Origin: Piromyces finnis finn
Taxonomy: Eukaryota > Fungi > Neocallimastigomycota
DNA: 64,000 nt
Direction: 5' to 3'
NCBI GenBank assembly: GCA_002104945.1
Contig: MCFH01000054.1
Location: 124,001-188,000, forward strand
The notes beneath the pieces are model-generated. The model searched no databases, had not been told where the DNA came from, and saw only the letters and a program-made list of their open reading frames with translations. Within the stretch, counting starts at the first letter, position 1; every line of letters starts with the position of its first letter. Shown here piece by piece: positions 18,176 through 40,370 of the stretch. Made by a program: the position numbers and the translations under genes.

Positions 18176-19990
18176 ATGTCAAATGCTGTTGGCATTGATT
18201 TAGGTACTACTTATTCATGTATTGCTGTTTGTAAAAATGGCCATGTAGAAGTTATTGCTAATGATCAAGGCCATCGTACAACACCTTCTTGTATTCTTTT
18301 TCATGAAGATAGAATTTATATAGGAAAAAATGCTGAATATAAATATAAAAAATATTTAGAAAATTACGTTTATGATGTAAAACGATTAATTGGAAGAGAA
18401 TACTCAGATCCAAATGTTCAGTCTGATTTAAAATATTGGCCTTTTAAAGTTATTGAAAGGCATGGAAAGCCTTATATTCAAGTTGAATATGGAGGTGAAA
18501 CTAATGAATTTATTCCAGAACAAATATCTGCCATGATTCTTTCTAAATTAAAAGATAACGCTCAAGATTATTTGGGTGAAGAAATAAAGGATGTTGTAAT
18601 CACCGTTCCTGCTTATTTTAATGATGCTCAACGTCGAGCGACTAGAGATGCCGGTAGAATTGCTGGTTTAAATGTTTTACAAATTATAAATGAACCAACA
18701 GCTGCTGCTCTTGCCTACGGTCTTAATCGAGCAATACGAGCTGAAAAAAATATTTTAATTTTTGACCTTGGAGGAGGTACATTTGATATTTCTATTCTAA
18801 CTATCAAAAATGGTATATTTAAAGTTAAGGCTACTACGGGCGATACACACCTTGGTGGTGAAGATTTCACCAATTGTCTTGTTGATTATTTTGCTGAAGA
18901 ATTTAAAAGAAAATATGACAAAGATCTTTCCACTAATCCAAGATCATTAAATAGATTAAAAGGAGAGTGTGAACATGCTAAATGTATTCTATCATTTTCT
19001 TCCTATGCTCCTATTGAAATAGAAAAATTATATGAAGATATTAATTTCTTTACCAGCATCACTCGTAGTGGTTTTGAAGAACTAATTTCAAAATTTTATG
19101 ATAGAATTATTGAACTAATTGAGAGAGCATTTAATGATACTCATTTAAACAAATCTGATATTAGTGAGATTGTCATGGTAGGCGGATCGACTAGAATACC
19201 AAAAATTCAAGAATTAGTTTCATCCTATTTTGATGGGAAAAAAATAAGAAAAACTATTAATCCAGATGAAGCAGTAGCACAAGGAGCCGCAATTCAAGCA
19301 GCATGTCTATCTGGTGATCAATCAGAATCAATTAGAGATTATGAACTACAAGATGCTATACCATTATCTCTTGGTGTAGAAAGTGAAAAAGGTTTAATGA
19401 GTATTATCATTAAACGTAATTCAACTTTTCCAATAAAGAAAACTGTTACATGTATAACCTGTGAGGATAACCAAAATTCAGTGTTTATCCGTATATTTCA
19501 AGGTGAACGAAGTTTAGTAAAAGATAATATTTTATTAGGTGAATTTATATTAGAAGGAATTACGGAAGCACCGTGTGGAGAAACATTAATAGAATTAACA
19601 ATAGATATTGATAAAAATGGAATTATTAATGTTTCTGCAGTTGAAGTAGGTACTGGTCTTTCTAGAGAGATTACCATCTCAAATAATAAAGATAAATTAT
19701 ATCAAGAAGAAATTGAACGTTTAATTAATGAAGCTGAAATGTATCGAGAAGAGGATTAGAGATCAAGAGAAAGAATTCAGGCTATGATTAATCTTGATGA
19801 ATATGCTCGTCAACTTCGTAAACGCCTCAATAATGAAGGGAATAATCTAAATATGAATGATAAAGAAAGATTGATTAATGAAATTAGTTCTACAATTGAA
19901 TGGATTATTAATCAACGTAATGCAAGTAAAGAAGAATATGATAATAGAAAAAATGAATTACAAAATCTTTTTAATACACTATTTAATTAA
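18176..19990 (+). CDS. HSP70: Atypical Hsp70 (copy A) interrupted by one in-frame TAG at 19757-19759
   Basis: Motifs [42 protein letters not shown] and GGEDF are present. After REED-TAG the same frame continues (RSRERIQAMINLDEYARQ...LFN*) and aligns with the lid of copy C. Confidence 0.92.
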
Positions 19991-20124
19991 TATTTTATAA
20001 TAACATTATCAAAGCTTTTCATGATTTAATTGATCTATTATGTATAATAATATCGAATATTATATTTCTTTATTTTTTTTTTTTACTTTATTTTTTAAAA
20101 AATTGTCGTTTTAATTAATTAATT

Positions 20125-20530
20125 AATAATAATAACAATAACAATAACAATAACAATAATAATAATAATAATAATAAACATAATAATAATAAACATAATA
20201 AACATAATAATAATAATAATAATAATAATAATAATAATAATAATAATAAATAATAATAATTAGAATAATAATAATAAATGGTAATAAATAATAATAATAA
20301 TAATAATAATAATAATAATAATAATAATAATAATAATAATAATAATAATAATAATAATAATAATAATAATAATAATAATAATAATAATAATAATAATAAT
20401 AATAATAATAATAATAATAATATGTAATAATAATAATAATAATAATAATAATAATAATAATAATAATAATAATAATAATAATAATATGTAATAATAATAA
20501 TAATAATAATAATAATATGTAATAATACTA
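20125..20530. repeat. Interrupted (AAT)n microsatellite array
   Basis: Long AAT run with AAC, AAACAT, TAGAAT and AAATGGTAATAAATA interruptions; it produces the spurious poly-L/Y ORF. Confidence 0.95.
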
Positions 20531-37633: not shown

Positions 37634-37845
37634 TCAAGTGTTGGTAATTTGGGAATTATGATGAATCCTATCATTGAACAAAATAATAATACACCTATAT
37701 TCCAGTAGAAGGTTAAGTATATATATATAATATGACATTATGGACAAATAATCATAAAATTTAGAGTAGTGCAGTATGAAAGTGAATTAGCAAAAGGTAA
37801 CACTAGAAAGTATTACAAGAACATGTTAATAATCTGTTTTCATAA
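37634..37845 (+). pseudogene. Third copy of the degenerate Hsp70 SBD/C-terminal fragment
   Basis: Near-identical to 33371-33582. Confidence 0.7.
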
Positions 37846-38846
37846 TATATCTTTTATTCTTCTATAATGAAATATATTAAATTAAAACATTATATATTCC
37901 TATTTCTCATAATTACTATTTATTTGTTTTTTTTTAAAAAAAATATTATCTTCTTTTTTCATCTTATTAATCTAATATTCTACTTTTTTTTTTTTATTCG
38001 GTTATATAGATAAATGAAATGAATAAATGAAATTGAATAAATGAAATGAATAAATGAAATTGAATAAATGAAATGAATAAAATTATAAATAAAATATCTC
38101 AAAATTCTTTAAATAATATTGTAAACTACACCACCATTTCAAGTATTTAAAATTCAATAAATCTTTTAATGATAAATATTTAATGAAATATTTTATTTTA
38201 TTTTTTTTAATTATATATAAAGGATAACATATATAAATAAATATTTACAGAATTTGTTCTATGTTTGTATACATATAATGAAGGAGAAAGAAACAATAAT
38301 TGATAAATAAATAAAATTAAAAAAAAACTTTTAAATAAATATATACGTAAATAATTATGTGTTTATAAAAAAAAACGATATTAAGTGAGAAAGATAAAGA
38401 GAGGTAGTTAAATAATTCAATGTTTTAATAATCATATAGAAAAAAAAGAACTTTTTATTTTTTATTATTTTATATATATTTAATAACAAAAAAATATTAA
38501 TAAATATTAATAAATATAATTCTATTTTATTATAATATTTTCTAATACATTTTATTTATTATACAGGATACAGGAATTATACTAAAATATAATTGTTTAT
38601 TTTACATATTAAAGAAGATTATCATTTTCATTTTCATTTCCATTTTTTAAAGTCTAATTTATTATTATAAAAAAATTTAATATAAAATATCGAATCAATT
38701 TATAGTTGATCATTTTATTAATAAAATTATATTAATTAGATAATTAGACACATATTTATATTTTATAAATTAATATGAAAAGAAAAATTCTCTTTAAATT
38801 TTTTTTTATTTTTCATTTTTATTAATAAATTAATAAAAAATTAAAA

Positions 38847-40370
38847 ATGAGTGGATTTATTGGTATTGACTTAGGTACTACTTATTCATGTATTGCTATT
38901 TATAGAGATGGTCATGTAGAAGTTATTGCTAATTATCAAGGACATCGTACAACACCTTCTTGTGTTCAAATTAATGGTGATTAAATTTTAATTGGAGAAG
39001 CTGCTATCCAAATAAATAAAAGAAATCCGCAAAATACAATTTTTGATGTAAAACGATTAATGGATCGTAATTTTAATAATACAGAAGTTCAATCTAATTT
39101 AAAACATTGGCCTTTCAAAGTTATTGAAAGAAATGGAAAACCTTTTATTCAAGTTGAATATGAAGGTGAAACTAAGGAATTTATCCCAGAACAAATATCT
39201 GCCATGATTCTTTCTAAATTAAAAGATTATGCTCAAGATTATTTAGGCGAAGAAGTAAAAGATGTTGTAATCACCGTTCCTACTTATTTTAATGATGCTC
39301 AACGTCGAGCGACCGTGGATGCTTCTAGGATCGCTGGTTTAAATGTTTTACAAATTATAAATGAACCCATTGAACGAGTTTTTTCATATACCGATTTAGA
39401 CGAATTGGATATTGATAAAATTATGTTAGTTGGTGAACCCACCCGAATTCCAAAAATCCAACAATTGGTCACCTCCTATTTTGATGGGAAAAAATTAAAC
39501 AAGACAGTTAATCCGGATGAAGCGGTTGCATGTGGAGCAATTCTTCAACAAGCTACTCTTTCTAGTGATCAATCAGAATCTATTAAAAATATAAATTTAC
39601 AAGATGTTACGACATTTTCCATTGGCATTGAGGATAGCAATGGTTATATGAATATTATTATTGAACGTAATTCCAGTCTTCAAATTAGTAGAACTCTATT
39701 TTGTACAACAAATGAGAATAATCAAAATTCAGTATATATCAGTATATATGAAGGAGAAGAAAGGTATGTAAGAGATAATTTTTTATTAGGTGAATTTATA
39801 TTAGAAGGAATTACGGAAGCACCGTGTGGAGAAACATTAATAGAATTAACAATAGATATTGATAAAAATGGAATTATTAATGTTTCTGCAGTTGAAGAAG
39901 GTACTGGTCTATCTAGAAAGCTTACCATCAAAGAAGAATGTAAAGAAAGGGATAAAATATTACAAGAATCTATTTTTTCTTATTTTGATGAAAAAAAATT
40001 AAAGAGAACTATTAATCCAGATGAAACAGTTGCATATAAAGCAACGCATCAAACAGCGAATCAGTCAAGTGATATAATTACTAAACATAATGCACCTATT
40101 TCAGAAGAAAAAGAAAAAAAAGATATGGATTCAAGTAAAATAATTGAAGAAAGTAAAGAATTTTTATATGATCTTCAATTTTATGCTTTTAACCTTCTTT
40201 ATCGTATTAAAGAAACTGATATAAATGATGAAACTAAAACAAATACATTATCTATTCTTATTGATTCTGTTCTTACGTGGATTGGAAGTAATAAAGTTAA
40301 TATTACTAAAGAAGAGTGTGAAGAAAGAAAAAAGATATTACAAGAAAACGCTAATAATCTATTTTTGTAA
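38847..40370 (+). pseudogene. HSP70: Hsp70 copy D: pseudogene with early TAA, 420-bp NBD deletion and fused duplicated segments
   Basis: ATG at 38847 and in-frame TAA at 38982-38984. IINEP joins directly to IERV. SYFDxKKL..T.NPDE.VA and KEEC.ER.KILQE each occur twice. Confidence 0.88.

Follow-up and report, generated by a model that had tools for sequence, protein, structure and literature searches.

The 64,000-nucleotide stretch of Piromyces finnis DNA analysed here (contig MCFH01000054.1, positions 124,001 to 188,000, assembly GCA_002104945.1; hereafter the window) carries a cluster of four Hsp70 genes, designated A to D, whose sequences are mosaics of one another. The contig is 386 kb long, the G+C content of the window is approximately 20%, and the proteins of the window match P. 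finnis gene models; only one P. finnis assembly carries the proteins of the cluster. All four copies are publicly annotated as genes. The Pfam HSP70 family (PF00012) matched A, B and C over their full length (6.6e-201, 3.2e-194 and 7.4e-208, respectively) and D partially, in two stretches (1.9e-92). Among the four, an uninterrupted full-length reading frame was found only in C (MCFH01000054.1:158556-160372), which is predicted to have the complete Hsp70 architecture of an actin-like nucleotide-binding domain (NBD), an eight-stranded substrate-binding domain (SBD-beta) and a helical lid. An AlphaFold2 model of C showed a complete Hsp70 fold, with strands at residues 390-500 and helices at 508-603 (predicted local distance difference test score 83.5, predicted template modelling score 0.77). 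B has no lid, and a lobe of the NBD is deleted from D.

The lesions of the other three copies differ in extent. A is interrupted by a lone in-frame TAG at 19757-19759, which shortens its product to 527 aa and is followed by 76 open codons up to the ancestral stop, with the lid in frame. Beyond the stop codon of B, about 13 lid codons have been deleted and the remainder has decayed; the ratio of nonsynonymous to synonymous substitution rates (omega) of this lid was ~1.1 against every other copy. D carries an in-frame TAA at codon 46 (38982-38984), an in-frame deletion of NBD residues ~175-318 at a GAACC microhomology, and a second, diverged NBD fragment (residues 344-381, 39960-40073) inserted after SBD-beta. 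The lid of D is divergent and unlike that of any other copy, with its 170 codons still open. B, C and D are each preceded, at a distance of approximately 1 kb, by a decayed Hsp70 relic.

The public model of D (P0121, 471 aa) contains a GT..AG intron (38979-39090) that skips the TAA and removes 36 codons. As these codons are still homologous to Hsp70, including a KR(L/M) segment, we rejected the intron as genuine; it is most likely a device of the gene caller to skip the stop codon, and hence probably an annotation artefact. We infer that C is the working gene, that A worked until a recent nonsense mutation and that D is dead, while B may encode a lid-less product or be a pseudogene. No perfect heat-shock element (nGAAnnTTCnnGAAn) was present in the window, where ~0.7 would be expected by chance; the scan, a weak test, gave no support for classic heat induction of the cluster. 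An exact-protein look-up of C returned the genome contig only, with no transcript-sized contigs, a result that is uninformative on expression.

At least two further Hsp70 clusters are present in P. finnis, one on contig 81 (L001; proteins P0010, P0007 and P0002) and one on the same contig as the window, about 100 kb upstream (L002). Two of their members, L1_3 (P0002) and L2_2 (P0004; L002:9671-11455), enter the comparisons below. An earlier note on this DNA had described Hsp70 copies with near-identical NBDs and very different SBD-beta sequences, and we mapped this mosaic by sliding identity and nearest-donor painting. Residue numbers are those of C, which equal DnaK numbers across SBD-beta. 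B and C were ~100% identical at the DNA level over codons 1-393, with only 5 substitutions between their NBDs, and then dropped to 43-58% identity in SBD-beta. The SBDs of B and D were 93.8% identical over 567 nt, and 91-100% identical over SBD-beta in sliding identity. A is a separate lineage, 60-90% identical to everything, that shares a tract of ~116 nt with B and D; this block, which C lacks, comprised 63 consecutive identical polymorphic sites (permutation p<1e-4) in surroundings that were 58-75% identical. A also shares with C and L1_3 the ...EAEMYREED block (residues 513-524) at 97% identity (p=2e-4). D combines a C-like 5' end, A-like patches (residues 101-115) and a B-like SBD. Each of the sharing relationships read off in the earlier note was therefore recovered, and the pocket-loop motifs that it quoted are present in the sequence.

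Recombination tests gave the same result. The pairwise homoplasy index was 0.155 for A to D, compared with 0.519±0.028 (p≤0.001), and 0.149 for eight P. finnis copies, compared with 0.324±0.004. In the NBD tree B and C were sisters (100/100), followed by L1_3; in the SBD-beta tree B grouped with D and A, and C with L1_3 and L2_2. Approximately unbiased (AU) tests, for which groups were named after the alignments had been inspected, rejected the NBD topology for the SBD data and vice versa (p values of 7.9e-53, 1.5e-5, 7.2e-7 and 2.5e-10). The separate NBD and SBD trees proposed earlier are thus incongruent. As both the NBD and the SBD of C are sister to those of L1_3, a paralogue on another contig, C and L1_3 are parents coherent across their domains and B is the recipient chimera. 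The mosaic structure of A to D is confirmed as real and far beyond chance. The homoplasy, AU and run-length tests together bear out segmental exchange among the copies, including the broken ones.

The boundary between the identical and the divergent parts of B and C is the end of a 4.1-kb inverted repeat (Table 1). Its arms are 99.85% identical, with 5 substitutions and 1 indel between them, and each holds a glutathione S-transferase (GST) gene, the relic, an upstream region and the first 393 Hsp70 codons; besides the GST gene, the arms include 3 kb of non-coding DNA. The outer arm ends fall at codon 394, directly after the conserved ...GDQSESIKNINLQDV linker. The 5' end of D stems from a third and older copy of part of the unit. 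Since the duplications took in whole segments, the upstream sequence is common to B, C and D over about 2 kb or more; A is flanked by sequence of its own.

At least three or four junctions clustered in codons 381-394, approximately 2% of the gene. At one of them the B/C repeat ends; the others are the crossover of L2_2 and, in D, the points where the B-like tract begins and the second NBD fragment stops. We did not count the relic as an independent linker breakpoint, as its 5' limit (residue ~377) may be only a detection limit in decayed sequence. That conversion stops at a cliff in homology was also considered as the sole cause of the linker junctions; this was weakened by NBD codons 36-75, which are equally divergent between the types.

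Table 1. Features of the Hsp70 cluster and its surroundings, in window positions
Feature	Position	Strand	Description
Hsp70 copy A	18176-19990	+	own NBD lineage, beta-prime SBD; full length in one frame bar one TAG
Gene-conversion tract in A	19530-19646 (approximate)	+	~116 nt, identical to B and D; C residues 452-490
CotH-kinase gene	23274-25559	+	CBM10 dockerin repeats
Hsp70 copy B	26460-28140	-	open reading frame 28140-26584, 518 codons/aa; beta-type SBD-beta
Inverted repeat, left arm	26959-31096	-	4138 nt; B NBD, its upstream region, Hsp70 relic, GST gene
Relic copy	~29156-29382	-	same decayed Hsp70 relic
GST mirror copy	29610-30662	-	complete
Spacer between arms	31097-31600	.	504 nt, asymmetric; parts and borders recur downstream of D (40332-41038)
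Inverted repeat, right arm	31601-35739	+	outer end at C codon 394, NBD-SBD linker
GST gene in repeat	32035-33087	+	complete
Decayed Hsp70 relic	33315-33541	+	C residues 377-452; two stops, one frameshift
Hsp70 copy C	34558-36372	+	604 aa, sole intact copy, no EEVD
Third, older copy of unit	36661-39367	+	95.9%; GST 3' part, relic, upstream region, first 520 nt of Hsp70
GST partial third copy	36796-37353	+	first exon missing
Relic copy	~37582-37808	+	same decayed Hsp70 relic
Hsp70 copy D	38847-40370	+	single frame, broken patchwork; B-like SBD-beta
CotH-kinase gene	41930-44470	-	CBM10 dockerin repeats and CBM1

The B-C-D part of the cluster is flanked by two CotH-kinase genes that encode CBM10 dockerin repeats and long repeat linkers rich in Thr and Ser, neighbours of a kind typical for anaerobic gut fungi. 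The two are inverted paralogues with 70% identity, and the pair suggests an older, larger palindrome that may later have received the third unit (about 4.27 kb). Rearranged segments with 90-94% identity are shared between the centre of the inverted repeat (30931-31766) and the region downstream of D (40332-41038), and the 3' flanks of B, the relic and D are ~70% alike. These likenesses hint that a tandem Hsp70 array existed earlier. Several intergenic regions (20110-20630, 25660-26010, 36520-36730 and 47320-48190) have long (TAT/TTA/ATA)n tracts of low complexity in common, one of them lying after A and one after C. Further genes in the window (433-1026, 15190-15831 and 11406-12074 on the minus strand; 53054-54778 on the plus strand) comprise two carboxylesterase/BD-FAE fragments, a MYND zinc-finger protein and two Fringe-like glycosyltransferase reading frames.

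Patchy mosaics were also observed in both further clusters of P. finnis and in an array from Neocallimastix, which points to a general property of tandem paralogues. L2_2 joins an NBD of the L1_2 type (93-100%) to an SBD and lid of the L1_3/C type (96-100%), with the switch point inside GDQSES (GDQSESIK) and patchy conversion around the junction. This pattern is the expected outcome of unequal crossing-over between adjoining tandem genes. The 594-codon frame of L2_2 is open except for a single in-frame stop at codon 80, a condition like that of A and D, and single nonsense hits in otherwise intact copies are common in this AT-rich Hsp70 family. In Neocallimastix (GCA_050613775.1), five tandem copies are patchworks of short segments with nearly every possible split; four of the five are full-length and intact, and N1 (L005:4123-5772) is truncated in the lid at 549 aa. 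Truncation of the lid thus recurs at a similar point in different arrays and genera (527 aa in A, 518 aa in B and 549 aa in N1), and could mark lid-less functional forms or merely the most tolerated lesion.

The repertoire of SBDs is small. Three SBD types occur in the window, each in three P. finnis genes only. In searches with the SBD alone, the beta type was confined to A, B and D and the alpha type to C, L1_3 and L2_2, and no carrier of either was found outside P. finnis. A scan of metagenome contigs with the SBD types returned only generic Hsp70/DnaK proteins, at 44% identity or less.

The genes belong to a fast-evolving Hsp70 subfamily specific to anaerobic gut fungi (Neocallimastigomycota). 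Its members, from P. finnis, Piromyces sp. E2, Neocallimastix and rumen metagenomes, are 604-610 aa long. None has the Gly/Pro-rich (GGAP) tail or the EEVD terminus, and all end ~35 residues before the end of yeast SSA3 (P0015). The interdomain linker reads KNINLQDV in B, C and D and RDYELQDA in A, in place of the canonical D-[LV]-L-L-L-D-V; linker position 390, an invariant Leu in 13 canonical sequences, has an entropy of 3.0 in the family. The equivalent in C of DnaK R167, which contacts the J-domain, is residue 169 (GLNVLQIINEP); this position is Gln in every P. finnis copy examined and Arg in those of Neocallimastix. The Gln, the altered linker and the absence of EEVD jointly suggest changed coupling to co-chaperones. 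The QGER and TTC motifs had led us to suspect an Ssb origin, which the phmmer scores against PDB chains do not support (HSPA1A 684 bits, BiP 618 and Ssb1 588); the judgement rests on these scores, with no dedicated tree.

The cleft residues conserved in canonical Hsp70s (the ETAGGVM loop, F426, Y429 and V436) are not kept in A, B and C. In its place C has DNRGTTV, R426, C429 and I436; B has DSNGYM, C426 and N429; and A has SEKGLM, C426 and C429. We compared column entropy between 13 family members and 13 canonical cytosolic Hsp70s. Mean entropy in the family versus the canonical set was 0.87 versus 0.56 for the NBD, 1.30 versus 0.58 for SBD-beta and 1.50 versus 1.32 for the lid. Positions that are invariant in the canonical set and highly variable in the family were 402-408 (loop L1,2), 426, 427, 429, 430, 437, 439 and 472. 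Of these regions, residues 404 and 429 form the arch over the bound peptide, and 426 lines the pocket with 436 and 438 (PMC8215388). The framework is kept in the family (S398, G400, I412, N415, P419, D431, Q433, G443, E444, L454, D479, N481 and G482), and position 404 is nearly always Arg or Lys. In A, B and D, whose SBDs are of the beta type, Cys replaces R467, a residue that latches onto the lid. The concentration of variation in the loops that enclose the substrate, as the earlier note had it, is accordingly borne out for L1,2, the arch and pocket position 426, with the framework fixed.

Rates of substitution separated the domains. Nei-Gojobori omega was 0.33-0.4 for the NBD, 0.5-0.8 for SBD-beta and 0.4 to 1.28 for the loop-rich first half of SBD-beta, the highest of these values being that of B and C over residues 386-449. 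Nonsynonymous evolution of SBD-beta was 2-3 times that of the NBD. The ATPase domain, called conserved in the earlier note, is so only relative to the SBD, as 16-21% of the positions invariant in canonical Hsp70s have changed in it. Synonymous divergence (dS) was 0.54-0.85 for pairs of SBD types, comparable to the 0.42-0.6 for pairs of NBD types, which makes the SBD types old. C, L1_3 and L2_2 have kept their alpha-type SBD conserved (omega 0.26-0.64); omega was 0.5-0.6 for the SBDs of A and B and 0.59 for the lids of A and C. In the Neocallimastix array, nonsynonymous to synonymous counts were 19:3 in the loops and 49:31 in the NBD. Replacements per codon there were 0.70 in the loops versus 0.13 in the NBD with similar silent rates (Fisher p 0.039), and the dS of the NBD was below that of the SBD.

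We consider it probable that the cluster evolves by birth and death combined with ectopic homologous recombination and gene conversion, and not by a dedicated diversification system. Birth-and-death evolution and recombination of this sort are each well known for Hsp70. Nested inverted and tandem segmental duplications, with gene-conversion tracts, have moved pieces between paralogues. Through the 4.1-kb inverted repeat, a C-type upstream region and NBD replaced those of B up to the linker. D acquired a 5' end of the C type and has its SBD in common with B, and A traded short tracts with B and D and with C. A probably preserves the NBD originally paired with the beta-type SBD, of which D keeps A-like patches. 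The mosaic would then be a by-product of non-allelic recombination between tandem and inverted paralogues. Chimeras joined at the linker would survive because both domains stay whole, and such survival is a plausible filter behind the linker junctions.

Kilobases of non-coding DNA and the GST gene moved along with the exchanged segments, which therefore look like segmental duplications resolved by homology inside Hsp70 rather than targeted cassette transfers. For most of the exchanged DNA, the effect is to homogenise the NBD and the non-coding flank rather than to shuffle pocket loops. The dedicated, cassette-like diversification that the earlier note had proposed is not supported, given the shared 5' flanks, the three old SBD types and the omega values, which are below 1 except for a marginal excess in L1,2. 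We infer that the divergence of the pockets goes back to old specialisation or to a relaxed constraint on client binding and not to an ongoing programmed process.

Several observations weigh against this preferred account. A parsimony count over 13 copies gave 32.6 replacement and 3.4 silent changes in L1,2 (omega ~2.5, nominal p 0.045), and at arch residues 404 and 429 there were 16.6 replacement and 0.4 silent changes. The consistently basic residue at 404 looks directed rather than a product of random decay, and SBD-beta is still open in B and D despite damage to their lid and NBD, respectively. The clustering of junctions at the linker is explained only in part by a model in which conversion stops at heterology; a hotspot at the DNA level or selection for reassortment of domains at codons 381-394 is possible. 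As to the positive selection on variable segments that had been expected, the L1,2 signal was not significant after correction for 15 elements, and the other elements of SBD-beta had omega values of 0.37-0.92. Positive selection on the cleft is thus suggested by these counts, but not shown.

The strongest rival takes these observations as its starting point. EEVD-less Hsp70 arrays would undergo germ-line combinatorial diversification under selection: a common ATPase engine would be maintained by conversion, the cleft (L1,2, 404/429 and 426) would be under diversifying selection, and divergent SBD modules would be maintained by selection and reassorted at a recombination-prone linker, yielding a panel of client-specific chaperones. 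Such a mechanism is not known to have been described for Hsp70. Such a process would account for the clustered junctions, for variability focused on the cleft over a conserved framework in two genera, and for the almost purely non-synonymous change at the arch. The Neocallimastix array, with four full-length intact copies and an NBD less divergent than the SBD at silent sites, also fits it. On the other hand, the selection signal is marginal, being nominal among 15 elements with a loop set that was partly post hoc, and three of the four window copies are damaged. Exchanged tracts also take along non-coding DNA and a neighbouring gene, and SBD types are few. We regard this rival as unlikely.

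Pure decay, in which all copies but C are dead DNA and the SBD differences are drift under relaxed constraint without functional meaning, would be compatible with the stops or deletions in A, B and D, the generally high omega and the near-neutral lid of B. It conflicts with the omega values for the SBDs of A and B and the lids of A and C, which indicate purifying selection for most of their history, and with the invariant framework, the basic residue at 404, the 170-codon lid of D that is open despite its divergence, and the intact Neocallimastix arrays. We therefore give this explanation little credence.

An artefact of assembly or polishing is very improbable. The inverted repeat and the 116-nt tract could in principle stem from mis-assembly or consensus polishing of paralogous long reads, given a repeat-rich genome of about 20% GC, a single public assembly and arms that are nearly identical. 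The repeat has, against this, a 504-nt asymmetric spacer, 6 differences between its arms, and outer ends that are in frame and homologous in the middle of a 386-kb contig. The older copies (95.9% and 93.8%) cannot stem from polishing, and analogous chimeras occur elsewhere in P. finnis and also in a second genus, in an assembly of its own. Programmed somatic cassette switching would have SBD segments copied from silent Hsp70 fragments into a single expressed gene while a culture lives. This is hardly credible, even though broken copies and relics lie beside an intact copy and share short identical tracts with it. The copies have full upstream flanks and are not promoterless, and the donor repertoire is limited to three types, all of them old and each conserved within itself. 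Neither repeats nor special motifs adjoin the variable part, a cytosolic protein has no obvious need of rapid switching, and the same mosaic is found in arrays of intact genes only.

Hsp70s are usually treated as slow-evolving and promiscuous, with paralogues that differ mainly in regulation or location. The P. finnis family has many recent paralogues whose ATPase domain is shared and whose client-clamping residues are sharply different, and recombination at the domain boundary yields new combinations of NBD and SBD. Neither this domain-level chimerism nor the cleft-focused variability of an EEVD-less subfamily was found described in the literature searched. For anaerobic fungi, the expansion of Hsp70 has so far been recorded only as a number of genes (PMC8778642, PMC10512342). 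If the cleft differences alter specificity, the family is a natural experiment on how client choice by Hsp70 is encoded, and could help to explain the high number of Hsp70 genes in these fungi. If they do not, the locus is a well-resolved case of nested inverted and tandem duplication with gene conversion in a repeat-rich fungal genome. The locus also serves as a warning, as several of its annotated 'Hsp70' models are truncated or broken.

Among known systems, families diversified from cassettes or pseudogene templates include trypanosome VSG, Neisseria pilE/pilS, Borrelia vlsE and the chicken immunoglobulin V pseudogenes. The P. finnis cluster resembles these in that intact and fragmentary copies are adjacent and share short identical tracts. 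It differs in having no single expression site with promoterless donors, a tiny repertoire, variants that are old and conserved, and a cytosolic product. A parallel to L2_2 is offered by Lepore-type hybrid genes, which arise by unequal crossing-over between tandem paralogues (haemoglobin delta-beta). As in these, a 5' part from one tandem neighbour type continues in frame into the 3' part of the type that follows; unlike in these, the two parental genes lie at a paralogous locus and there is patchy conversion near the junction.

Gene conversion among Hsp70 paralogues is well documented for the Drosophila hsp70Aa/Ab inverted pair, human HSPA1A/HSPA1B and yeast SSB1/SSB2 (PMC3879978). The present cluster is like these examples of concerted evolution in its tandem and inverted copies, its near-identical tracts with sharp edges, its phylogenetic signs of exchange and the persistence of differences specific to paralogues. 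It is unlike them in that exchange ends at a domain boundary, so that a shared NBD is joined to SBDs only about 50% identical. In addition, tracts here span several kb of flank together with a GST gene, many copies are broken, the EEVD is missing and the linker is altered.

With respect to the cleft, the nearest comparison is with the specialised Hsp70s HscA, Ssq1 and Ssb, in which client specificity is narrowed or altered alongside substitutions at arch (404/429) and pocket (426/436) positions, and of which Ssb is also without EEVD (PMC8215388). The P. finnis family is altered at the same arch and pocket positions and, as in Ssb, lacks the EEVD. It differs from these chaperones in that a single genome holds many recent paralogues, each with a different set of residues, and in that its closest relative of solved structure by score is HSPA1A (684 bits versus 588 for Ssb1).

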